DNA of 64,000 nt, taken from Neoconidiobolus thromboides FSU 785. Taxonomy: Eukaryota; Fungi; Entomophthoromycota. The notes under the pieces were generated by a model. That model did not search any database, was not told the DNA's origin, and saw nothing but the letters and a program-made list of their open reading frames with translations. The DNA is taken from the NCBI GenBank assembly GCA_025603075.1, contig MU626295.1, positions 1-64,000 of the forward strand, read 5' to 3'. The position numbers and the translations under genes were made by a program. Every line of letters starts with the position of its first letter. Within the stretch, counting starts at the first letter, position 1. Positions 139 through 62,617 of the stretch are shown piece after piece.

Positions 139-1470
139 ATGTCTATTCAATTCGATCATTTACCTATTGTTTTATTAGAAGATATATTCAAATTACTGGA
201 TCCAACTAAACTATTTGACTTACGCTTTTTAAACAAATACTTATTTAATATTGCAAATAATACAATTAAATATAATTTATCTTATTCAATTTATTATTAT
301 AATGTGAGTAATCAATATAGAGTATACCAACAAAACTTTATTGAACAAAATGGAACAATGATGAAACATATATATTTATATGATGACAACCTCAAATTAT
401 TAAATAAATGTCCTAATATAACATCGTTAGAGATTGATGATCGAGGCGATGACTTTGATTATGATGAAGATACTGACTATATTGATGAACATATTGAATT
501 TAGTATTAAAACAAATCTAACAAAACTAAAAAAGTTAGTTATTTATAACAACAATATCGTCGGTTATTTGAAGTTATTTAATAATTATCTCAATCAAATT
601 GAAATAATTGAATTAAGGGAAATATATAAAGACCATGGATTTGGAATAAATATCGATAATATAGTTAAACACCTTATCCCTAATAAACTAAAGTCATTAA
701 CATTAGATATTAATGAATTAAGCCCTCATATATTAAATGTAATAAAAACAAAGTTTGTTAATCTAAAAGAGTTAGATTTAGCATGGTGTAATTTCCATGA
801 TACCCCGATTAACCTTAATCCCAATGTCAACTTTGCATCTCATTTAAAATTAAAAATTGAAGGATGTTTTGGTAATAATTTTAATATTGAGTTCCTTGGT
901 AATTTAAATTGTCTAAAGCAAATAGAATTGAAAGATACATCCACTTATTTGTTTGATACGTGTAGTGATATTAAACTGATTGAAAAAGACAATTTATTTG
1001 TTTCGGGAGAATCAAATTTCAATATGCCAATTGATCATTATCTGACAAAATTAGCCTACTCAAAACAATTGTATGTTTATAATCTATCTGCACCTTTATT
1101 TAATATACTTCCATCATTACCAAATATGCTACATCTTTTTATTGGTCATTTATCAATGAATTATTATTATTCAAGTCATAATTTTGATTTAAATGAGCCT
1201 AGTAAATATAAAGTTGACTTTATAAAACAAATTACAGTTATTCAATTGGATCTATATCTGGATGAGTTTCTTTCGTTTTTATCATTTTTTCCAAATCTTC
1301 AAGTTATTAAAATTCGATGCTTTAAGTTGGTAATAAGAGAATCGACTGTTACCTATAATCCACCTACTTCTTTACTTCTTATTACCTCTATTCCATATAA
1401 GCATGATCCAGAACTCTATCGAGCATTAGATCAGATTTTTAAAATGAATTGGATAAAGTATGGACTATAA
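139..1470 (+). CDS. F-box-like / degenerate LRR (RNI-like) protein, intronless, 443 aa; member of a lineage-expanded family
   Basis: N-terminal F-box-like motif (LPIVLLEDIFKLLDPTKLFDLRFLNKYL) followed by LxxLxL repeats (LTKLKKLVI, KLKSLTLDI, NLKELDLAW, NLQVIKIRC). Three decayed paralogs lie elsewhere in the window. Confidence 0.75.
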   Translation: MSIQFDHLPIVLLEDIFKLLDPTKLFDLRFLNKYLFNIANNTIKYNLSYSIYYYNVSNQYRVYQQNFIEQNGTMMKHIYLYDDNLKLLNKCPNITSLEIDDRGDDFDYDEDTDYIDEHIEFSIKTNLTKLKKLVIYNNNIVGYLKLFNNYLNQIEIIELREIYKDHGFGINIDNIVKHLIPNKLKSLTLDINELSPHILNVIKTKFVNLKELDLAWCNFHDTPINLNPNVNFASHLKLKIEGCFGNNFNIEFLGNLNCLKQIELKDTSTYLFDTCSDIKLIEKDNLFVSGESNFNMPIDHYLTKLAYSKQLYVYNLSAPLFNILPSLPNMLHLFIGHLSMNYYYSSHNFDLNEPSKYKVDFIKQITVIQLDLYLDEFLSFLSFFPNLQVIKIRCFKLVIRESTVTYNPPTSLLLITSIPYKHDPELYRALDQIFKMNWIKYGL

Positions 1471-2977: not shown

Positions 2978-4082
2978 ATGGTTAGACATTTTGCACGTTT
3001 GTTTTATCTTTACTTTTTTATTTAATTTATTTGATGTTTATGTTTCAATAAAATTAACACAATGCTCTGCTGTGTTATCAAAGAGGACATTTTAAAGTCC
3101 TTTCCTAACAGAATAAACTTATTGAAAGGAATTCAGGGGGTCACTTGTTTTGATAAAAATTTCGATTTTATGTTTTGTTAACAAAACAAAATGTGTTTGT
3201 TATTTATTATAAAGCTATAATAATAACCAAAGTTTATAAAGGTCGTTTTAACTACAGGCCTTTGATTTTGGTATTAGTAATCAACAAGTTTACCATATTT
3301 TAATCACTTCAAGTGTTAACAACAAAAGCAGCATTATTTGATAATTATTGAGATTACTGATCTTTTGTTTGTAACTACCATACTAATAAAGACATTAAAG
3401 CAATTATATTTTAATATTTTATCCAATTTATTTTGAAAATTTGGCCCAATGCTTGATAGGGTTCTAGATCACATTCGTATCGAATACAAGCAATAAGAAG
3501 TAAAGAAGTAGGAATATTGTAGGTAACAGTTGATTGTCTCATTTTCAAATCAAAGTATGGGGACTTTAATAACTTGAAGGTTTGAAAAAAATGATAAAAA
3601 ATCATCCAGATAAAGATTTAATTAATTAACTGTAATTTACTTTATAAGGTCAAGTTTATATTTATCAGTTTCACTTAAATCAGACTTTTGAAATAAACTA
3701 TTATTATCAATTGATAAACGACCAACAAAAACATGCCATATATTTGATAATAATGGAAGTACGTTGAGTAAACCTGTAGACAGATGATGTACATACGATT
3801 GCTTTGAGTCAATTAGTTTCATCAAATAATAGTTAATTGGCATATTGAAGTTTGACTCTACTGAAATAAATAAATTGCCTTTTTCATTAGTTTAATATTA
3901 ACATACATATCAAATAAATAGTTGGAATCATCTCTCAATTCTGTTTGCTTTAAACAATTTAAATTACCAAGGAACTCGATATTAAAGCCATCATAAAAAT
4001 ATCTTTCAATTTTTAACTTTAAAGGAGACACAAAACTGACATTGGGGTCGAGATTAACTAAGGATTATTAAAACCACTATAT

Positions 4083-4179
4083 GAAAATGTTTTTTTGGTT
4101 TCATTACTTTTTCCATTTTTTGAGTGCTACCTGAGCGGAAATTTTATTAGCAAAATTCTTAAGCAAAAAACACATTCCT
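4083..4179 (-). mobile_element. MITE copy 3, inserted in the F-box pseudogene
   Basis: Reverse-oriented consensus match; ATAT at 4079-4082 and 4180-4183. Confidence 0.92.
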
Positions 4180-4759
4180 ATATGCTAAATTTAGTACTTT
4201 TAAATTTAAAAACTTTGTTTTTATTATATCTAATCCACTAAGCTTTATAATAAAGTTTAATGTTAACGAATTCAACATATTAGGATTAAAATATTCAACT
4301 ATATATTCAATACATCAAGTTCATTAAACCTGATTCTTTCCATTAATTCAATTGTTTCAATTTGATTGAGATAACTATTAAATAGCTTTAGATAGCCGAT
4401 AATATTGTTGTTATAAATAACTAACTTTTTTAGTTTTGTTAGATTTGTTTTAATACCAAATTCGATGTGCTGATTAATACCTTCATAATCAAAGTCATCA
4501 TTATAACTATCAATCTCTGACAATATTATATTAGAACAATTAATGATTTAAAACTTATCATCATATAAAATTAAATGTTTCGTTATTTCTCCATTTTGTT
4601 CAATAAAATTTTGTCAGTATGTACTATATTAATTACTCTCAATATAATAGATTGAATAATATAAATCGTATTTAATTGTATTGTTTGCAATATTAAATGA
4701 ACATTTATTTAAAAAGCGCAAATTAAATTGTTTAGTCGAATCTAATAATTTGAATATAT

Positions 4760-4858
4760 GGGGATGTATTTTTGTGTTTAAGAATTTTGCTAACAACTTT
4801 TCCACTCAAATAGCGCTTAAAAGATAGAAAAAGTAATGAAGCCAAAAAAAACACCCTC
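4760..4858 (+). mobile_element. MITE copy 4, inserted in the F-box pseudogene
   Basis: ggggatgtattttt...acaccctc; ATAT at 4756-4759 and 4859-4862; removal restores codons caa gat ata ttc. Confidence 0.95.
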
Positions 4859-5272
4859 ATATCTTGTAATGAAATAATAGGCAAACGATTGAGTTGAATG
4901 GTCATTTTAAATAAATTTATAAAGAGTCAAAACGAATTTTACATTGATTACGTATAAATGTTCTTTTCAAATTTTAATACTAATTTCCATGCAAAAAAAA
5001 ACTACAGAAACTTATGAAAAATACTAATGTTCAATATAAATAAAAATGATAATTCTCAATGGCTTACATTATAACTATCAGCAGTAATACATTCTATTCA
5101 ATGTGTTTATACTGTTATTTTATCACAATTAAACTAAATTTAAATAAAACTATGTAAACTATAAGTAAATTAGCATTTAAGAAATTTCAAAAACTATCAT
5201 AACACAGTAAACCAAGCTACATAAATATAAAAAACAAAATTTTAATATAAAAAATTACTCTATAAAATTAAA

Positions 5273-6576
5273 TTAAAGCTCAATTTCGTCTGGATTTTCA
5301 TCCGGACCATTGGCTTGATTATTGTCTGGTTCGTCCTCTGATATCACTTCTGGGATATCTTTTATAATATCTACAACTTTATCCACTTCAATCTTATCAT
5401 AATCATTATATTTTGGTACTTTTGAATTATTATTTGGTTTTGGCTTGATATTTAAATCTCTTTCTAAAGCTTCAATATCACTATCATCATTAGTAAGCCC
5501 AATAGATTTTAATTTTGGTGATGAATCATTGACTGGTAAAATTGGGCTAATATTTAAATTATCGGGCATTTCATGGTATACATGTATGGTAGGAAATTCA
5601 TAAAATCTAATATGAGATAAAGCTTGTTGCAATGGCGTATCTGAATCAAGTTGGTAGAAAGTAGGGGTTTTGGCCTAAAAATATAAATAATGGTTTCATA
5701 TTATACAAAAATCGCTTACGTTGGTATTTATTTTTGAAATAAAGTAGTATAATTCTATACTTTGAGTTAATATGCTACTACAAGGATGTTCTTTGACTGA
5801 TTTTAACATTTTGATATCATCCGAATTTTTGCTACTGTTAACCTTTGATCGAATTTTTGATTCGAATAATTCATCCAATGTTTCTATACCCTTATTATAA
5901 TGAGTTACTACTTCAATATCCATTTTATCATTAATTATAAGTTTCCAAGTGATAGTCCAAAATGACGTATTCTCCCTTAATTAAAGTTAATATGCCTCTA
6001 ATTTAAGTTGTTAAAATTACCTATAGCACCAAAAGGAGCGATTAAGCTTAGCTTTAAGCATACCTTTACTTAAGCTCATAGCTTTAATATTAAAGGATTC
6101 TAATTTTTTATTTAACAAGTTTAGTTTCTTATTATAATTGGTATTTTTAAACTCGGCTTTATGATGAAGCTCTCTTTCTGAATTTTCCGCTATCCTTGTA
6201 ACTTCTGTTAAATATTTATAATCTAAAATCTTCAGTTATATATATTTTGTTGTACCAATATATTACCATTTAATAAACTATTTTCATCCAATTTAGCCTT
6301 TGGCAAGAACTCAAAATTTGCCTTTTTACCACTGCATTTATTACGAGCTTTATGAGTTTTAACACACTCCACGCAACATGTTTTCATCAAACAAGCTGGG
6401 CATTTATATTTAAAATCCTCTTTTTTACATACTTCACACTTAGTATCATCAATAATTTGACCAATACTAGTTATATAAACTTCGTTTTTTTTATTTGGTT
6501 GGTCTCTTATCTTGATTTCTCCTTCCTGTATCGGTATAGTCGTTTCTTCAGACTCAAATAATGGAAAAAAAGACAT
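5273..6576 (-). CDS. BCD1: Box C/D snoRNP assembly protein (zf-HIT, ZNHIT6/Bcd1), multi-exon
   Basis: zf-HIT CEVCKKEDFKYKCPACLMKTCCVECVKTHK...CSG. Spliced continuation LLNDYKYLTEVTR, FWTITW and C-terminal LQQALSHIRFYEFPTIHV. Joins three ORF-track fragments. Confidence 0.9.
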
Positions 6577-8382: not shown

Positions 8383-9237
8383 GAAATAAAAGTGCTTTTA
8401 GTTATTTTGTTTTCCTTATTGTTTTTTCTGCTCATTCAAAATTTAATTCTACTTACTTTAGATTAACTTTTATTTAAATATTTGATGTTTTCGTTAATAG
8501 GTCTGCGATTTTGTAGAATACACAATAGTGTATAAGTTGATCCCCTTTTTTAATAAGTATAATTGAGTTATTCTAATATAAAATGCATTTGATTACGCCG
8601 AAGTATTTAAAATTTGCTATCAGATATTACATATCACTAAAGATCTCGGTTTCAACTGTCTTTATTATCACAAAGTTGAGAAACCGTCTTGTGACAAATT
8701 TGTGTTTTACACCATCATCAAAGCCTTTCGGAACCCAATTCTGACTTATCTCAAGTACTTCATTTTTGTTTTTGCTCGCTTTCTTTCCTACTTCATTCAA
8801 CTTGTGAATATCTTCTCTCATTACTGTTTTTTTATCAATTTTCCATTCAAGCTACTAAAACCTGGATCATTTACACATATTTTTCTAAACTATCAGTTGA
8901 TAGTACACCTACTGCACCTCAAACTGCCTCTATTTTAGTTCATACCTGGATTGATATGTGCAAAATTGGATATAAAATAGTTAAATATATTTTACCATGG
9001 TCCAAAGCAGACGCCATTAAATTATAGTATCTTCTTTCACATACTTCGTTTTTATCTACCCTCTTTTTTTCCCCTCTTTTTACTTCCCTTTATTTTTAGC
9101 TTGTACATTCATAAATGAAACCCTTAAGATTGTCGATTCTTTCGGGATTTGAAAAAAACAATTTATTTAAAGTATTGTCTTTTAGGAATAATTAGCATTT
9201 TTTAAAATATGTAGATTCACTTTTATTATCATCATAT

Positions 9238-9336
9238 GGGGATGTATTTTTGTATTTAAGAATCTTACTAACAAATTTTCCACTTAAATAGCACTTAAAA
9301 AATGGAAAAAATAATGAAGTCAAAAAAGATACTCCC
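9238..9336 (+). mobile_element. MITE copy 5
   Basis: Consensus match; ATAT on both flanks. Confidence 0.92.
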
Positions 9337-10357
9337 ATATATTCATTGTAAATTTCATATCTTAATAAAGTATGACATCTTATTTGTTTAAATAATTTTT
9401 ATCGTCTGTTTTTATAAACCTACACCCTTTTTTAAGCATACCTCTATATACTTTTATTTTAATTATTACTACTTATCCCTACAATATAAAACTAGCTAAA
9501 AATACTGAAATGACTCCCAGTTACTGCTTTTGACTCTTTATTTTTTTTCAGGGAATTAACAATGAACTAAACTTAAATATGTTTTAGATCTATTTTATTT
9601 TCAAAAGCAAAAATAGTATAGTTTGGTCTCCTTTATTGTAAGTACTGTACTCGTTTCTTATATCGATGGCTATCATTCTCCCATTTATATCTTACTCTTA
9701 TTTACTAATATTAGACTTTTTCATTCAAGTATTTAAGAACTAATTAGCTTATTTGAAATTTAAGTGAAAAAGGCTATTTCCAAAATCGAATATCAAAAAA
9801 TCACTTAATATTTAATTATAAACTGATGCTTATGAAATATCATTTGTTTTATTATGTTTCATTAGAAATAAACAGACTCAAAAGTATATTTACTTTTATC
9901 AAATATTTTAATAAAGGCTGAATAACTTCATTTTAATTATATTCACTAATATTTTGAATCCAGTCAATGGTAAGTACTAAGTATGAGCACATGGAGAAAT
10001 TTAATCCAGTAAAGGCATTTATTTGAGTGATCTTCCAAAATGAACAAATATTTTATTTGGCAAGTTTTAATGTTATACAGCTCTAGTGTTAAATAATGTT
10101 ATATTCTTATCTATCTACTGCTTATTTCATTTGACTGATTCTTATTTTTAATTTTTTCCAATTTGTAATAAATTAATATATAATTTTATTTTATCTTATT
10201 TTATTCTATTTAAAAATATCACATAGCCCTATTGTTTTAAAATGGGTTTTATTATTGTAAATAATATTGCCCAAACTATTTAATAGATTTAAAACCAACA
10301 ATAGCCTAGAACTATTCCTTAGAAGAAGCGTGGAATTAAACGATTTTATTAGTATAT

Positions 10358-21489: not shown

Positions 21490-22235
21490 TTTATATTGAT
21501 ATGGAATATTATATATTTTTTAAAGTTGAAGCGTTGATTTTTATTTCTTTTTATAGCTTTTCTTGGAAATATGGTGTATGCCAAGCCATTTTAAATTGAG
21601 ACATTACTGAATTAAAATTTTAAAGCTCCTTTGGCTATTTGGAATCTTATTTTATTTTGGTGTATTCTATCATGATTTAATTAGGAATATAATTGAAAAT
21701 AATAGTTTTAGTAGTTCATTCAATAGTTCTTTAGTAAATAATATTCTTTTTTATTTATTGATGGATAAAGTTAATGATCCGGCTAAGTTCAAAAGTTCAA
21801 AATTTACAGTTTAACCTTTATAGTGATAATTTCGAGCTTATTCAAAAGGATGACAATTTCTATAGGATTTGTTTATAACTATCAAAAGCTGAAGAAATAA
21901 AGCTTCAAAAAGATAGACTTCGATTGTAAATGAACTCATATCCAAGGCCTCACAACTTTAAATCGAACATCTTTTTCCAGATAACGATACTTTAAAAGTT
22001 ATTTAAGGTCATTTTATATAGTAGTCATATTTTTTCAATTGAAAAACATTCTTGATTATAAGATAGTAGATATTTTACAATTAAAATTTAGTTAGTTTGT
22101 AAAAAAGCTATATCATAACAACCTTATACTCTTACCAATTAAGATTCACAAAGAAATCAAGATTATTAAACTTACGACCTAGTAATACAAAAAATTATTT
22201 AATTCACTTAATCTTGACTTTATGTTAGTATATAT

Positions 22236-22329
22236 GGGGATGTATTTTTTTGTTAAGAATTTTACCAACAATCTTTCCCACTTAAATAGCGCTCAAAAAT
22301 GGAAAATAATGAAATCAAAAAACATTCCC
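22236..22329 (+). mobile_element. MITE copy 8
   Basis: Consensus match; ATAT on both flanks. Confidence 0.92.
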
Positions 22330-22787
22330 ATATTTTATTACAATTATGTACTAAACAATTAGGTATGTTTGATTATTTTCAAATTTTCTCAACTAAATGT
22401 TAATAATTTAATATAAAATTTTAAAAAATGTATATAAAAGCTTAATATCTATATATAATGCTTCTGATTGATGGATTTTAGTTGTGATAAATTTTTTAAA
22501 TAACATATTTGGAATATAAATCCATTTGCTTACAATTTACTTTAAACTTTCATGTTTATTGAAATTCATTTATAAAATCATTAAAACTTTATTACAGTCT
22601 AAAATTTAATATATACTTAAAATAAATATTCTATAATAATATGCAGTGAAATTATCAAATAATTAAAAATATAGTTAAAAATCCTTTAAAATATATTTGA
22701 TATGCTTTCTATGCAATATCTAAAAATGATTAGAACTTTAACTTTTAAATTATTATCAAAATTTATATCTAATTCCACAAAATATAT

Positions 22788-22879
22788 GGGGATGTTTTTT
22801 TAGTTTTATTACTTTTTCCATTTTTAAGCGCTATTTGAGTGAAAAGATTGTTAGTAAAACTAAAAAAAAATACACCTCC
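22788..22879 (-). mobile_element. MITE copy 9
   Basis: Reverse consensus match; flanks ATAT/ATGT. Confidence 0.9.
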
Positions 22880-23715: not shown

Positions 23716-24609
23716 TTATTCTTTAACTCCAACCAAAAGTTTCATATTCCACACCACTTTTTTAACCTCCTCCGGCTCTCCCCAAGCCTTCAAAAGTTGC
23801 TCATAATTCTCAGTAAGCGCGTCTTTCTCGGTATCCTCTTTATACAATTGCGCTGATGATCGAGTTCTAAGATAATCACAATACTGATCTAAATTTAAAT
23901 GTTTAACCGATGAAAACTGTTTATTGACTCCATCGGAATCCTTTGTATGCCACTCTGGTGTTTTAAAAGGCCAAGGGATAGTAGAATACCCTTTTTTACA
24001 ATGTTCAACCTCTATAGGGTCGTATTTTTCAAAATAATCTTTTTCAATTTGAACATGTATTTGGTTAACTTCTTTGTTAACTTCAGGGTGCCAGTAAACC
24101 CACGCTGCTATGATCCCTCCTTTTTTTAATACTTTATTAACTCGTTCATAGAATTTATCAAATGGAAACCAATGTATACCTACAGCTACAGTGATTAAAT
24201 CAACCGAGTTTGGAGCTATTAGATTGGAATCAATAGCTTCACTTGGCTCTACTTCATATCTTATATTAGGCTTTTTTATTGCTTCAGAAATTTGCTTTTC
24301 ACTTAGATCAGTGGCTATTACATTATCAAAATAATCCGCTAATAAACTTGCAGCTTGACCATTTCCAGTGGCTACATCCCTAAAGAATGATTAAAGTTTG
24401 AATTTTATTATGGACATAGTGACTTACCAAGCCAATTCTCTTTTTGTAATATTCTTTGTTAAATAATCGAACAACTCCTTTGGATGAGATGGTCTATTTT
24501 GAGCATATATTTTAGAGTGGTTAGAAAATAAATCTTTGCTTTCACTTTTCATATTCGTAAACTTAATTTTAGTTAAAACACTTGCTAAAATTTTATTCCT
24601 TTTTAGCAT
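23716..24609 (-). CDS. Class I SAM-dependent methyltransferase (Methyltransf_11-like), paralog A, 2 exons (intron 24427-24380); second ATG at 24552
   Basis: DLFSNHSKIYAQNRPSHP, motif I AW|DVATGNGQAA, VIATDLSEKQI, SVDLITVAVGIHWF, VLKKGGIIAAW; open frame to stop at 23716. Confidence 0.92.
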
Positions 24610-25001
24610 TTATATAACTTTGTTAACCTTTGTCATGGTTACTTATATATAATCACTCTTGCGGAGTTATTTTTATCCTTAGTCCGTGAATTCTAAAATT
24701 GTCCTGAAGCATGGTAAGACAAATTATAAATAGTGACTCAATTTGTATAGTTTGTAATTAAAATAGTGTATTTAGACTTAGGTATAAAAAATAATTTATT
24801 TTTAATCTGATTAACAATTGTTATTAGAGCTAGAATAACATCATAAAGACATTGCAAAAATGATATATTTTATTTTTAAAATACTAAATTAAATCATAAC
24901 TTATTAATAACAAGTCATGCCACATCATACTTAAAGGAGGATGACGTTTGGTAAATAGAAAGTATAAATAACAACCGAAAATAAGAATATATTCAACAAT
25001 A

Positions 25002-25841
25002 ATGAAGAGTGAAAGCAAAGATTTATTTTCTAATCATTCAAAAAACTATGCGGTTTATCGTCCAACACATCAAAAGGATTTGATTGAATATCTAGTATCC
25101 TTTGTAAATGAAAAAAGGCTAGTATGGTAAGTCACTATGTCCATAATAAAATTCAAACTTTAATCATTCTTTAGGGATGTAGCCACTGGAAATGGTCAAG
25201 CTGCAAGTTTATTAGCGGATTATTTTGATAATGTAATAGCCACTGATCTAAGTGAAAAGCAAATTTCTGAAGCAATAAAAAAGCCTAATATAAGATATGA
25301 AGTAGAGCCAAGTGAAGCTATTGATTCCAATCTAATAGCTCCAAACTCGGTTGATTTAATCACTGTAGCTGTAGGTATACATTGGTTTCCACTCGATAAA
25401 TTCTATGAACGAGTTAATAAAGTATTAAAAAAAGGAGGGATTATAGCAGCTTGGACATATTATATACCAACAATTAATGAACAAGTTGATGAGGTACAAA
25501 ACAAAATTCACATTGAAAAAGTAAAACAATTTGAAGCTGAAGAAGTTAATTATGTAAGTAATGGATATGCTAATTTACCTTGGCCATTTAGAAAACCAGA
25601 TAATTTTCAATGTGGTGAGGATGGCGTTAACCAAAAATTTTCAGTAAGTAAAGAAATGGATTTTAATCAATATTGTGAGTTTTTTAAAACTAGTTCAGCT
25701 GCTCAATTATACTTTGAAAATAACGGAAAAGACATTATTCAAGATCACTACAATGAAATGCTTGAGGCTTGGGGTAAGAATCCATCTATTACTAGGAAAG
25801 TTACTTGGAACATTAAGCTGTTGCTTGGCGTCAAAGAATAA
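25002..25841 (+). CDS. Class I SAM-dependent methyltransferase, paralog B, 2 exons (25002-25126, 25175-25841)
   Basis: Same motifs as paralog A; 48-nt GT-AG intron; intact frame ending KLLLGVKE*. Confidence 0.92.
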
Positions 25842-25994
25842 CTAATTGTATAATAAAGTTAAGTTTATTGAATTTATTTTAATTTGCTTTAGATATTTTA
25901 AATAAGAATTTAAATTAATAAAATATTATTAGTAGTAGTATATTTTTATTTCAATATATAAATTTTCATTAAAATTATTGAAATGGTATGATAT

Positions 25995-26089
25995 GAGGAT
26001 GTTTTGTTTGGTTTCATCACTTTTTCCATTTTTCAAGCGCTATTTGAGTAGAAAGATTGTTAGTAAAATTCTTAAATAAATACATCCCC
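25995..26089 (-). mobile_element. MITE copy 10
   Basis: Reverse consensus match; ATAT on both flanks. Confidence 0.92.
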
Positions 26090-26363
26090 ATATATGACAA
26101 AGTATATAAGAGCCTTATTTTAAATCATAATAAATGTCATATATGTTCAATCTTAATTATCTTCACATTTTCTTATATAAATGGAATAAAATATTTTAAA
26201 CTACAAGTATAATATATAAAGAGTTATATAAAACTAAACAAGTATTGAACTCATTAGGTCATTTTAATAAACCTTCAAAACAAGTTTTATAATGAAATAG
26301 ATAATTAAATTTCAATATCACTTAAAACTAATCAGAAACATAAGATTAAGACTAGCAATATAT

Positions 26364-26462
26364 GGGGACGTATTTTTGCGTTTAAGAATTTTACTAACAA
26401 ATTTTCCGCTCGAGTAGCGCTTAAAAGGTGGAAAAAGTAATGAAGTCAAAAAAATCATCCCC
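26364..26462 (+). mobile_element. MITE copy 11, just 3' of tRNA-iMet
   Basis: ggggacgtattttt...tcatcccc; flanks ATAT/ATGT. Confidence 0.92.
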
Positions 26463-26499
26463 ATGTCTAAAAACTAAACTAATTGAAAAATTAGTAAGT

Positions 26500-26571
26500 T
26501 AGCAAATGTAGGTTTCGATCCTACGACCTCGGGGTTATGAGCCCCGCGCGCTTCCTCTGCGCCAATTTGCT
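26500..26571 (-). tRNA. Initiator tRNA-Met (CAT)
   Basis: 72-nt cloverleaf AGCAAAT...ATTTGCTA; A1-U72 pair, GGG/CCC anticodon stem, CAT anticodon, T-loop ATCGAAA (eukaryotic initiator signature); T-run terminator about 10 nt downstream. Confidence 0.97.
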
Positions 26572-27043
26572 ATAAATTATTGACTAACAATTTCTACTTA
26601 ACCTAATTTTTATTTTTTAGTTTACAAATAAGATCTAATGTTCTTGCAAAGGATCATAAATTATACTTAGTACGAATTCTAGTCAATAAGAACTATAGTA
26701 ACTTAGTTACTTCTTTTAATTCTATTTTAGAATGGTATTTCTTTTAATCAAATAAAATATATTAAATGGCAGTTACCAAGACAGTGGAAAACTAATAAGC
26801 GGTAGAATTTTGAATAGGGTTTAATAAAAATAGACTAAAAAAAGAGGGGGTGGATAAAAAAACTGGTAAGATAAGAGATGAATAAGAGGTACACTTAGAT
26901 TGGAGGATAAGTAAAAAGAAAAGAAGGAAACTTAGAAAAGGAAATAGGACTAGGGAATCGCAACTGGTTAAGGCAAAGTATTGAATTCAATCAAAAATAC
27001 CAAGTTTTCCGTATTATGGTTCTACTAAAATTAATATTATTTT

Positions 27044-30140: not shown

Positions 30141-31312
30141 ATGAGTGAATATCAATTTCCAACTCATAGATTAGCTACCGCTTTAGAAGGTATTTCCTAT
30201 TGATTGTTATATACTTTTTATATGTTTGACTTCAATAAATAAAAGACAATCTCATTTTAAAACTCAATATTTAATTCATTTTCAACTCTACAGATGAATC
30301 TCGTACCCCATTAATATTAGTAGCATGTGGTTCCTTTTCACCAATTACTTATTTACATCTAAGAATATTTGGTAAGTATTATTTAATCTTCATCTTTTTT
30401 ATTTCTCTTAACATCCTCAAACTCATTACTAATTCATCTCCTTTTTCATAAATGTAGAAATGGCTCGTGATCACATTCAAGATTTAGGGAAATTTGAATT
30501 AATAGCAGGCTATTTTTCCCCTGTTTCGGATAAATATCAAAAAGAAGGTTTGGCTAAAAGTGAACATCGAGTCAACATGTGTCGTATGGCAGTAGATTCT
30601 ACTTCAAATTGGTTAATGGTAGACGATTGGGAAGCTAGTCAACCTACTTATCAGAGGTCTGTATTAGTACTGGATCATTTTGATAAAGAAATCAATCAAG
30701 TCAGAGGAGGGGTAGTGACTAAAAGTGGTAAGTTAGACGATAGAAGAGGAATACAATAATTGAAGTTTATTCATTATTTTGAATTTTATTAGGTATTCAT
30801 AAAAAAGTTAAAATTATGTTATTAGCTGGTGGGGATTTAATCGAATCTTTCGGTATACCGGGACTTTGGGATCCATTTGATGTAATTTTTATTTATTTTT
30901 AAATTTCATTCATTAATATAAAATATATAGTTAAATAGGATTCTTGGAGAATATGGTACAGTGGTAGTTGAAAGGACAGGAGTTGATGTTTATGGATTTT
31001 TATTAGCTAATGATAGTATTTATCAACATAGAGTAAGTTTATGTGTTATTATAGAAATAAGTCAGTTCTAATTTTTGTTTTTCATTTTGATTATTTATAG
31101 AAAAATGTAATTGTAGTTAAACAATTAATTCATAATGATATATCATCTACAAAGATAAGGTAAATTTCAATTTACTTTTTTTTAAAATAGAAAATAATTT
31201 CAATGTTTTTATTTATATTAGATTATTTGTTAAACGAGGTATGAGTATCAAATATTTATTACCAAATCAAGTAATTGATTATATTAACAAACATGATTTA
31301 TATAAACAATAA
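30141..31312 (+). CDS. NMA1: Nicotinamide/nicotinate mononucleotide adenylyltransferase (NMNAT), 7 exons
   Basis: LVACGSFSPITYLHLRIFEMARD, WLMVDDWE, MLLAGGDLIESF, ISSTKIRLFVKRGMSIKYLLP. Confidence 0.95.
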
Positions 31313-31550: not shown

Positions 31551-33986
31551 TTAATTTCTTTTAATGAAATAAATTATTCTTTTAGATTCCAGCAACTGAG
31601 GATGTTTTTCGATTATTTTATCAAACTCAATAAAATCTTTATTTTTAGCACAACAATAAGCAAAATTTTCCAATACTTTAGTATCCCATTTATCTTCATT
31701 ATTGATAAAAACCTCCTTTAAAAACTCAAACAACTCTTTATTATTCAACGCATTTTTAATTAAACATTGATAAGGTTCATTAAATTCATTAAATTCTTTT
31801 TCTTGATTTTTAAAATAAGCAATAAAAAAAGCAGTCCCTAAATGATTTTGAATATTTTCTAATAAAATAGAATGTAATATCCCATCTTTTTTTAAATTTA
31901 ATTTACTTAATAATTCTAAAAATTTATAAACATCAGATAATCCTCCTTTAAACATATGTCTTCCAATTAAACTAGTATAATTAATTAAGTCTAATTGAAT
32001 ATTTTGTTTTTCCATTTGTAGAAAGATTTCTTTTGCTAAACTTAATTTACCAACTTTAATAAATCCTCTTGTTAATACAGAATATAATATTTTATTTGGT
32101 AATAATCCTTCCTTTTTCAATTTTAGTAAAATACTTTGCACCATATTTAAATCTTGTTTTTTTAGATAATAATTAATAATTTGTGTATATAAAGGTAAGT
32201 CCCCTTTAATATTATACTTTATCATTAAATTAATACTATTTTCAATTTCAAGATGTTGATTAGATTGAATCAAATTATGAATTAAATAAGCAAAATTCTT
32301 TAATTGAGGTGTAATACCTTGTTGATTTAACTGTAAAAAAAATTTAATTACTTGTTCATATTGTTGATTTAAAATATATTCTTTTATAATTATATTAATC
32401 AAATCTACTGTCGGATATGTTTCTGTTTCTATTATATCTAAGAAAGTTTCTACTAATAATAAATATTCCTTGTTTAAATTTAATATTCTCATTATATATT
32501 CAATACTATTCATTGTTAATGTAACTTCCATTTCTTTAGAATAATTAAACAAATCTAATGTTGAATTTAAATTTAATGTTTGACTTAATAATTTAAATCC
32601 AATTTCGAAAGTATAACTAGTTAACGGTAATTGTAATTGTTTAATATCTTGAATTAATAATAATCCGATTTCTTCCTTATTACTTTTATAATAACTACTC
32701 ATTAATTGATGATAACTTTTAATTGAATAAATCTTTTTTTCTTTTAATTCTTTGATTAGTTTAGTTGCTAACTCTAATTCTTTTTCCTCACATAAATATT
32801 TGATAATAGAATCTATTAAGTTTTCTTTTGCTAATACTTTTAATTCCACATTAACTTCACTTTCATCTATTTTGTTTAGTAATAAAAAATAATCTGGCAT
32901 CAATGGGCAATATTTTAATATCAAAAAATTAACAAAACAGTTACCATGAATAAAATTTAATTGATTTAATGGAATTTGATTTAATATTCTGTCAATGTTA
33001 TTAATTTCTTTCCTTTTTAAACAAACAGTAATTAATTGAGATTGAAATTGAGTAGATGGTACACCACCTAACTTTATAAATTGATTATAACTATTTTTTG
33101 TTTTTTCCAAATCATTATTTTTCAAATATCCTTTACCCATAGTAATAAATAAATTCTCATCTAAAATATTTCCTGTTTTATTCCTATATTTCTCCATAAT
33201 CTCTTCTGCGTCTATCATTCGATTTTGATTCACAAAAAAAGCTATAATTTTATTGAGAATGAAGGAAGGTAAACTCAAATCAAACAAATTCAAAAATAAT
33301 TTTAAATTACTTGCATCTTTTCGATCTACAAATGCCATCAATAAAGCCATTTTAACTTTATCTGAATGTGAACTCAAATTCTGTGATATTAATTTCAAAA
33401 GTTTAATACTAGTTAATGTTCTACTTTCTTTACCTAATTTTTGGATTAAAATAACTAATATTTTATCATTTAAATCCATCTGTTTTTCTTTCATTTCATT
33501 TAATAAAATCCAACATTCTTCAAACCTATTAGTGGAAGCAAAAGAATACATTAATTGTTCATAATGTTGTATATTCATTTCTTTAGATGATAGTTTATAA
33601 TCTTTAATAATCCTTAATACTCTACTAACTCTATCCTTTTCGCAGCTTTTATTCATCTGAATTAACAAATTAGTCAAATCAACACTATCTAAATACTTTA
33701 TAACCTTTGTTGAATTGTAATGATTCCAAATTTCTTCTACTTCTCCTTCTCTTTCTCCTTCTTTTACTAATTTCAAATGCTCTATATAAGATTGATTTAT
33801 TAACTCCTTCTTCTTATTCTCTAATTTTTGTAATATATCTAAATGTTTCTTTTTACTATCATTAATTAGAAATAGCTCAGTTAACTTAGGTATTTGTATA
33901 TTACTATCAATAGTTATACTTCGCTTTAAATTAAATAAAAAATTATTATTTTTTAATCCATTATTTCTGATTCTAGTTTGTAACAT
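31551..33986 (-). CDS. Pentatricopeptide-repeat protein, mitochondrial, 811 aa, intronless
   Basis: Presequence-like N-terminus (MLQTRIRNN...LKRS); many ~35-aa PPR motifs (HYEQLMYSFASTNRFEECWILLNEM, PNKILYSVLTRGFIKVGKLSLAKEIFLQM). Confidence 0.9.
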   Translation of the reverse strand: MLQTRIRNNGLKNNNFLFNLKRSITIDSNIQIPKLTELFLINDSKKKHLDILQKLENKKKELINQSYIEHLKLVKEGEREGEVEEIWNHYNSTKVIKYLDSVDLTNLLIQMNKSCEKDRVSRVLRIIKDYKLSSKEMNIQHYEQLMYSFASTNRFEECWILLNEMKEKQMDLNDKILVILIQKLGKESRTLTSIKLLKLISQNLSSHSDKVKMALLMAFVDRKDASNLKLFLNLFDLSLPSFILNKIIAFFVNQNRMIDAEEIMEKYRNKTGNILDENLFITMGKGYLKNNDLEKTKNSYNQFIKLGGVPSTQFQSQLITVCLKRKEINNIDRILNQIPLNQLNFIHGNCFVNFLILKYCPLMPDYFLLLNKIDESEVNVELKVLAKENLIDSIIKYLCEEKELELATKLIKELKEKKIYSIKSYHQLMSSYYKSNKEEIGLLLIQDIKQLQLPLTSYTFEIGFKLLSQTLNLNSTLDLFNYSKEMEVTLTMNSIEYIMRILNLNKEYLLLVETFLDIIETETYPTVDLINIIIKEYILNQQYEQVIKFFLQLNQQGITPQLKNFAYLIHNLIQSNQHLEIENSINLMIKYNIKGDLPLYTQIINYYLKKQDLNMVQSILLKLKKEGLLPNKILYSVLTRGFIKVGKLSLAKEIFLQMEKQNIQLDLINYTSLIGRHMFKGGLSDVYKFLELLSKLNLKKDGILHSILLENIQNHLGTAFFIAYFKNQEKEFNEFNEPYQCLIKNALNNKELFEFLKEVFINNEDKWDTKVLENFAYCCAKNKDFIEFDKIIEKHPQLLESKRIIYFIKRN

Positions 33987-42952: not shown

Positions 42953-43143
42953 ATTGATAAATGTAAGATGTTATTTTACTAACTTTATAATTGATTACAA
43001 TGTAATAACTGTTTAAATCATTTATATAACTAATCGTAATTTTACAATTAATTCGATTATAATTTATATAATGAATATATTTAGCTTTAAGCAATTTGGT
43101 TATTAAAAATTATAATCTTTTTAAATTCAGGTATAATTAGTTT

Positions 43144-43242
43144 GGGGATGTATTTTTGTATTTAAGAATTTTACCAGCAAATTTTCCACTCAAATAGCGC
43201 TTAAAAAATCGAAAAAATAATGAAGTCAAAAAAAACACTCTC
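43144..43242 (+). mobile_element. MITE copy 17
   Basis: Full-length consensus match; flanks not duplicated (GTTT/ATGT). Confidence 0.9.
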
Positions 43243-43625
43243 ATGTCATCATACAAACTATTTTCTCAACTTGATACATTAGTATTTCAGGGTATTGTAT
43301 TTTTGTTATAGCCATAATATAACGAAAATATTTTAATCAAATCAATTTTTTTGTATCTGTTTTTAGTTTCTAGTTTTAGCTCTGTACATTTTTATAAATG
43401 TAAAATTAAATACTGATCAAAAAATTTGCAAGAACTTTTGAAAAATCTAAATACTATATCAGAGATATCATTGTGATTGAAATGGCTAGTCTAAAGATAT
43501 AAATAGTTCAAGCAAGCTCTAAAACAAGCCAATAAAGTGTGTTATTTTGATGAATAATTTACGTCAATCAAATCTAAATTTAAAGCTTTAAAATAAAATA
43601 AAACTTGATCTTTTGTTTATTGAGT

Positions 43626-62175: not shown

Positions 62176-62409
62176 TATATTTGCGTGATTTTATAACTAT
62201 AGTTATCACCATTTTTATTGTAAAATCATATTAAAATTGTATTATTTTCAATATTTTAATAAATAAATATCTATAAAATTAATTTAAAATAATTGCTTTA
62301 AAAATCAATTATTTTATTTTATTTACAAAAATGATTAAGTAATAATACTGGAATTAATAACTTACAACTTAAAAGTAATAGTATTTTTGTTAATATGAAG
62401 TCAATATAT

Positions 62410-62508
62410 GGGGATGTATTTTTTTGTTTAAGAATTTTACTAATAGCTTTTCTACTCAAATAGCGCTTAAAAATAGAGAAAAGTAATGAAACTAAAAAAA
62501 ACACCCCC
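62410..62508 (+). mobile_element. MITE copy 21
   Basis: Consensus match; ATAT on both flanks. Confidence 0.93.
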
Positions 62509-62617
62509 ATATGTTTATTTAGATTATATAAACTTATTATTCTATGAATTCAAACGTCATTATTTTAAATCAACTTGTTAAGTAAATAACAAAAACTATT
62601 CTATTAGTAACGAAGCA

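Follow-up and report, generated by a model that had tools for sequence, protein, structure and literature searches.

Probable gene conversion of the catalytic core and intron in an old inverted pair of methyltransferase genes of Neoconidiobolus thromboides

Two methyltransferase genes of the fungus Neoconidiobolus thromboides FSU 785 stand head to head and share an almost perfect inverted repeat that includes their intron, whereas the remainder of the two genes is strongly diverged. How can one part of a gene pair be nearly identical, down to its intron, when the parts on either side of it are so different, and what does the inverted arrangement of the identical parts allow? A first-pass annotation of this DNA attributed the identity to recent gene conversion that has kept one catalytic core under two different substrate-binding halves, and saw in the geometry the possibility of a flip-flop inversion. 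We followed up both proposals in the 64-kb window (the whole stretch of DNA that was analysed; 26.6% GC) and in the 24.6-Mb assembly of 799 contigs from which it is taken.

The genes, here called A and B, are divergently transcribed and have one intron each. Gene A is on the reverse strand, where exon 1 (24428-24552) supplies 41 codons and the TG of a split tryptophan codon and corresponds to residues 1-41 of the annotated protein P0002 (262 aa). It is followed by a 48-nt phase 2 intron (24380-24427; GTAAGT...TTTAG), the removal of which yields P0002, and by exon 2 (23716-24379), in which positions 23716-24378 translate to residues 43-262 and the stop codon occupies 23716-23718. An in-frame ATG located upstream, at 24609, is not used by the public model of gene A. 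Gene B, on the forward strand, comprises exon 1 (25002-25126; residues 1-41 of P0001, 263 aa), a 48-nt intron (25127-25174) with the same sequence as that of gene A, and exon 2 (25175-25841), in which 25176-25841 translates to residues 43-263 and 25839-25841 is the stop codon. The intron divides the tryptophan codon between TG and G in both genes alike. A word-based protein search identified P0001 and P0002 as proteins of N. thromboides FSU 785, encoded on a 139,874-nt NCBI contig and annotated as 'S-adenosyl-L-methionine-dependent methyltransferase' and 'methyltransferase type 11', respectively, and exon-by-exon translation of genes B and A equals these annotated proteins. Comparisons and searches were made with the separate exons or with P0001 and P0002 rather than with joined spliced sequences. 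The earlier description of both genes as intact agrees with these translations and with the retention by each protein of all 17 residues that are invariant in the family alignment.

The start codons are separated by a divergent intergenic region of 449 bp (24553-25001; 23% GC) that must hold both promoters. Its two halves are only 36-50% identical to each other and are thus unrelated. Together with both first exons, this region is contained in the 695-bp spacer (24430-25124) that separates the arms of the inverted repeat, as had been described before. When the spacer was scanned for bacterial-type promoters, sites were no more numerous than in shuffled sequences, a result that is in any case irrelevant to a fungus.

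A repeat search delimits the arms at 24100-24429 in gene A and 25125-25454 in gene B. They are 330 nt long, 99% complementary and 695 nt apart, and in an ungapped comparison they mismatch only at 25392, 25394, 25442 and 25451 (gene B positions), the first two of which fall in one codon (Leu in B, Phe in A). The remaining part of each arm, 267 nt at 24163-24429 and 25125-25391, is perfect; the arm in gene B encodes residues 42 to ~137. The tract of 317 nt with 2 mismatches that was initially reported is exact for 25125-25441, and its extension over the whole intron holds as well, the introns matching at 48/48 positions. The tract takes in the final 2 nt of exon 1, the whole intron and the codons for strands β1-β5, in homologous register and with both reading frames and all splice sites preserved. 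Its edges are sharp. In a 50-nt sliding window, identity drops from 1.00 within the tract to 0.54-0.62 towards the end of exon 1, and on the other side it falls abruptly to ~0.55 past 25454. A perfect run of 267 nt would arise by chance with a probability of ~1e-59 at 60% per-site identity and of ~1e-12 at 90%. It is the only repeat of at least 120 nt above 85% identity in the window; the tract occurs twice in the 24.6-Mb assembly, and A and B are the only paralogues of this kind in the genome.

The contrast between the tract and its flanks is strongest at sites that should be close to neutral. By the Nei-Gojobori method, dS is 0.05 in 93 core codons, where the three synonymous differences all lie near the 3' edge, compared with 1.26 in the C-terminal 128 codons and ~2.0 in exon 1. 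The same codon is used at 90 of 92 identical core residues, as against 26 of 50 in the C-terminal half. The perfect 267 nt contain no difference at ~96 near-neutral sites, which places their divergence below ~3%. These values, together with the identical intron, bear out the proposal that core and intron were recently converted. The accompanying estimates of flank divergence were also accurate: the C-terminal portions are identical at 49 of 125 residues (39%; 35-40% had been judged by eye), and exon 1, described as clearly diverged, at 25 of 42. Because the identity within the tract extends to the intron and to synonymous sites, purifying selection does not explain it. This gene pair itself illustrates the point: both proteins begin with the same 14 residues in exon 1, and yet four of the six synonymous sites in these codons differ (pS 0.67), so that ordinary purifying selection on the protein does not keep silent sites alike in this pair. 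We had considered a second, older tract at this 5' end of exon 1, where a 93-nt inverted repeat of 77% identity includes a 26-nt perfect run, and rejected it, because the same pS value points to purifying selection on the peptide. We also rejected the notion that the main tract is a transposon or MITE, as the genome contains no more than two copies of it and outgroup methyltransferases have a homologous core (57% at the amino acid level).

The duplication itself is old. A maximum-likelihood tree inferred from the C-terminal columns, with 75 outgroups included, groups the C-terminal halves of A and B as sisters (SH-aLRT 99) that lie 1.32 substitutions per site apart; they are 39% identical to each other and at most 32% identical to 58 outgroups. 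A protein search returned no orthologous pair in other organisms, and the next relative is about 41% identical. Old sister C-terminal halves joined to near-identical cores imply that the duplication is old and the core young. On this sequence evidence the A/B pair is best described as an old, lineage-specific local inverted duplication with a recently homogenised core.

What the tract corresponds to in the protein is indicated by family and fold. The Pfam Methyltransf_11 profile (PF08241) matches exon 2 of gene A (E 1.1e-11) and of gene B (E 5.5e-12), and the two exon 2 translations, which score 46.6 and 45.6 bits, are well above the cut-off of 21.2. P0001 matches 4HG2, an uncharacterised 'methyltransferase type 11', over its full length (E 2e-27), whereas its sequence likeness to yeast Tmt1 (3G5T, trans-aconitate 3-methyltransferase; E 4e-9) is restricted to the N-terminal half. 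The closest sequence relatives are prokaryotic or metagenomic, at ~40% identity. AlphaFold2, run with 77 family members, gives a confident model (pLDDT 94.2, pTM 0.90) that has seven strands (β1 40-44, β2 61-66, β3 81-85, β4 101-106, β5 126-136, β6 194-203 and β7 249-261), N-terminal helices at 10-19 and 25-32, cap helices at 144-170 and further helices at 205-241. Model and family alignment together contain the glycine-rich motif I, the acidic residue at the end of β2 and the seven-stranded Rossmann-like fold, and D43, G47, G49 and D66 are invariant across the 77 family members. The top Foldseek matches are 4HG2 (E 3e-26), Tmt1 and the pantaphos methyltransferase HvrF. Superposition gives TM scores of 0.79-0.88 with 4HG2 and 0.70-0.79 with Tmt1 (3G5T), and the model also superposes on HvrF (9E72). 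Tmt1 and HvrF, the nearest characterised folds, both act on small acid substrates. By sequence and predicted fold, genes A and B look like working small-molecule methyltransferases of the class I SAM-dependent kind exemplified by 4HG2 and Tmt1.

When the tract is mapped onto the model it covers β1-β5, the Rossmann half with the SAM-binding motifs, and its 3' end lies just past the codons for GGIIAAW, the β5 motif. The diverged parts are the N-terminal helices, the cap helices and β6-β7. The earlier picture of one catalytic core that is shared beneath two distinct halves is thus a fair structural description of what the model predicts. In class I methyltransferases the parts outside the core generally decide the substrate, and it is a reasonable inference from the model that A and B carry two different substrate-binding halves.

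Taken together, the tract is very probably the product of interlocus gene conversion between old inverted paralogues, a conclusion drawn from one assembly of one strain. The exact register of the repeat and its intact splice sites and frames argue for homologous repair and against a fold-back or transposon origin. From the form of the tract we infer a recombination mechanism, repeated conversion and boundaries set by selection, as follows. A break or gap in one arm would be repaired by homologous recombination with the other arm, ~0.7 kb away, as template, mostly without crossover. Heteroduplex would be unable to enter the flanks, which are ~55-60% identical, so that the ends of the tract would be pinned at the end of exon 1 and after GGIIAAW. 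Selection for differing N-terminal and cap/β6-β7 parts probably set these limits; the C-terminal half has a dN/dS of ~0.4. The 5' edge, at most 2 nt from the junction of exon 1 and intron, would fit such selection, with a neutral intron free to be converted and a variable exon 1 end not. The outcome would be two enzymes with a common SAM-binding core and a differing remainder, and possibly with different substrates. A signature of GC-biased conversion is absent, GC3 being 0.16-0.17 in the tract and 0.20-0.31 in the C-terminal halves; conversion does not require GC enrichment.

The distribution of the mismatches bears on how often conversion occurred. All four are confined to 63 nt at the 3' end of the 330-nt repeat (P = 0.0013, or 0.007 when the pair in the same codon is counted once), which suggests at least two conversion events with different 3' ends. 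The tracts would then be nested: the older would extend to 25454, whereas the younger would stop before 25392. Recombination between strongly diverged sequences is strongly suppressed, and had conversion first set in when the copies already differed as much as their flanks do now, it would have been very inefficient, so the model needs homogenisation to have been going on since soon after the duplication. In such a history the flanks would have escaped and diverged at some stage and from then on would have blocked the extension of heteroduplex.

The same pattern is found elsewhere in the genome. Among 23 matches to the WOPR family is a head-to-head pair on another contig (C245) with a 486-nt inverted repeat at 93% identity, which includes a 273-nt perfect run and has abrupt edges. 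The recurrence at an unrelated pair favours a generic recombination process over a device specific to the methyltransferase locus. The seven genome matches to the FA_desaturase family include no adjacent inverted pair. The methyltransferase and WOPR pairs together suggest that ectopic conversion between neighbouring paralogues is unusually visible in N. thromboides.

Three other accounts of the repeat have to be weighed against continuing conversion. The closest to it is a single recent replacement of one core by the other, by a one-off conversion or a template switch between genes that had long since diverged, without ongoing concerted evolution. A single event of this kind, with a few later mutations, would likewise leave a sharp-edged, near-perfect tract, and our data are one genome at one time point. 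We nevertheless regard this account as improbable, because the recombination that it asks for is strongly suppressed at the divergence now seen in the flanks, and because the clustering of mismatches at the 3' edge is better fitted by nested tracts of different ages. Less likely still is an artefact, in which the true arms are less alike and were made the same by the assembler or a read-based polisher, or, in a weaker form, the arms are right and the orientation of the spacer is arbitrary. Identical inverted repeats of a few hundred bases are difficult for short-read assemblers, and unless the 267-nt perfect part is bridged by a read or a read pair, the assembly graph favours neither orientation. 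Which exon 1 is joined to which C terminus in P0001 and P0002 hinges on how the assembler resolved that stretch. The recurrence of such a tract at the WOPR pair could also be the product of a systematic artefact. However, reads across the edges of the tract are uniquely anchored by adjoining flanks that are ~50-60% identical, and mis-mapping cannot raise ~70% identity to 100% over 267 nt. Four mismatches moreover survive in the tract, the frames and splice sites are intact, and the window is without any N.

The last account extends the inversion proposed at the outset: crossover in the 330-nt arms would flip the 695-bp spacer, different nuclei or strains would carry different orientations, and the locus would act as a switch with four combinations of promoter, exon 1 and C terminus. 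The geometric part of this proposal stands: the inverted arms, at 99% identity, have sufficient length for homologous recombination, a crossover would exchange promoter and exon 1, and because intron and core are identical either orientation would give two intact spliced reading frames. Since a recombination intermediate can be resolved either as gene conversion or as crossover, the spacer may plausibly have flipped now and then in the course of evolution. The switch is another matter. The assembly, which is one consensus path, has one orientation of the spacer and no contig with an alternative junction; each arm, exon 2 and junction is present once. No recombinase-like gene was found among the long open reading frames within ~8 kb, which give only cytidylyltransferase-like and PPR matches in a scan that is blind to intron-split genes, and no core sites for site-specific recombination are evident. 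The recurrence of the pattern at the unrelated WOPR pair points to a generic process and away from a dedicated switch. The predicted four proteins would moreover differ from the known two only in which 42-aa exon 1 and promoter goes with which C terminus, and the two exons are 60% identical. That the spacer flips often enough for both orientations to be present at once, whether in different nuclei of the coenocytic mycelium or in different isolates, or that this fungus reshuffles gene halves in general, therefore seems very doubtful, and a dedicated invertible cassette is the least probable of the accounts considered here. Inversion, if it did occur, would add a case of recombination-based isoform shuffling, of which eukaryotic examples are rare.

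Gene conversion between the arms, our preferred reading, has close precedents. The inverted hsp16 modules of Caenorhabditis elegans lie 416 bp apart and are 100% identical between fully diverged flanks, adjacent inverted hsp70 genes and the col-12/col-13 pair, with its converted intron, are further cases of concerted evolution, and published conversion tracts may include short introns (PMC3966223). The A/B pair resembles these genes in its close spacing and in its sharp tract of ~100% identity that takes in a short intron between diverged flanks, and for those genes, as here, conversion was inferred from the contrast between tract and flank. It differs from the hsp16-type cases in that the tract is a part of the gene, corresponding to one half of the enzyme, and in that exon 1 and the C-terminal half are at saturated synonymous divergence. 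A literature search found no comparable report for an entomophthoralean fungus. In the primate red and green opsin genes and in RHD and RHCE, introns and part of the coding sequence are homogenised and functionally distinct segments stay different. The A/B pair shares with these mosaic paralogues the confinement of conversion to a part of the gene; in our case, selection at the boundaries is suggested by the abrupt edges and by the C-terminal dN/dS. The human FLNA-EMD inversion and, among bacterial invertible cassettes, the shufflons and the hsdS inversion systems are the relevant comparison for inversion. In all of them inverted repeats flank an invertible segment, and, as would hold here, inversion pairs 5' and 3' gene parts anew; the A/B locus is unlike them in its single orientation in the assembly, the lack of a recombinase in nearby long open reading frames and its short arms. 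The process behind the A/B tract is thus well known, and what is particular is the neat fit of the tract to one structural half and the intron, and the lineage in which it is found. Because only part of each gene reflects the age of the duplication, whole-gene dating or tree-building with A and B is unsafe. Set beside the systems above, the pair is a clear instance of concerted evolution limited to one domain, in which core and intron have been held identical and the N-terminal helices and the cap/β6-β7 region have diverged to saturation.

The tract shared by the two methyltransferase genes, gene A (P0002) and gene B (P0001), contains a single residue difference, encoded by CTC (Leu) in B at 25392-25394 and TTT (Phe) in A at 24160-24162, that is, by two base changes within one codon. 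The site directly follows a nearly invariant HWF motif. The family consensus here is Phe, which makes the Leu in B the derived state. Conversion may have missed this codon, or the difference may have been selected for. Upstream of the start in the public model of gene A there is an in-frame ATG that would add 19 residues (MLKRNKILASVLTKIKFTN; 24553-24609, minus strand); this extension has no counterpart in gene B.

Among the matches listed, the closest relatives of the two proteins outside their own genome are about 37-42% identical, and those that are named are archaeal or bacterial (Nitrososphaera, Cyclobacteriaceae and Blastocatellia), plus one ciliate, the remainder coming from metagenomes. 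No named fungal homologue is present among the 120 matches listed, and the match to the yeast trans-aconitate 3-methyltransferase Tmt1 is confined to the N-terminal half. A horizontal origin of the two methyltransferases is possible.

The pair is flanked on both sides (22230-22870 and 25973-26500) by a MITE-like repeat family with inverted termini, the copies of which are around 147 nt long and 71-76% identical to each other. Further copies lie at 4751-4897, 9229-9375, 43135-43281 and 62401-62547, and one copy adjoins a tRNA-Met gene (26498-26572, minus strand). Two ORFs in the neighbourhood, one for an 811-aa PPR-repeat protein (31551-33986, minus strand) and one for a cytidylyltransferase-like fragment (30460-30759, plus strand), are ordinary context genes.

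The same window holds a further inverted paralogue pair, arranged tail-to-tail (139-1470, plus strand, and 3411-4523, minus strand), in which one copy is an intact ORF of 443 aa, leucine-rich-repeat-like in appearance, and the other is degraded and split into short ORFs. Their inverted repeats are 76-85% identical across about 1 kb, and the pair has no high-identity tract. Elsewhere in the assembly, a segment of contig C245 (12500-19500) carries a head-to-head pair of WOPR (Gti1_Pac2) genes, a family with at least 23 matches in the genome. This pair shares a 486-nt inverted repeat of 93% identity (arms at 1280-1765 and 5142-5627 of the segment), with a perfect run of 273 nt and abrupt edges.
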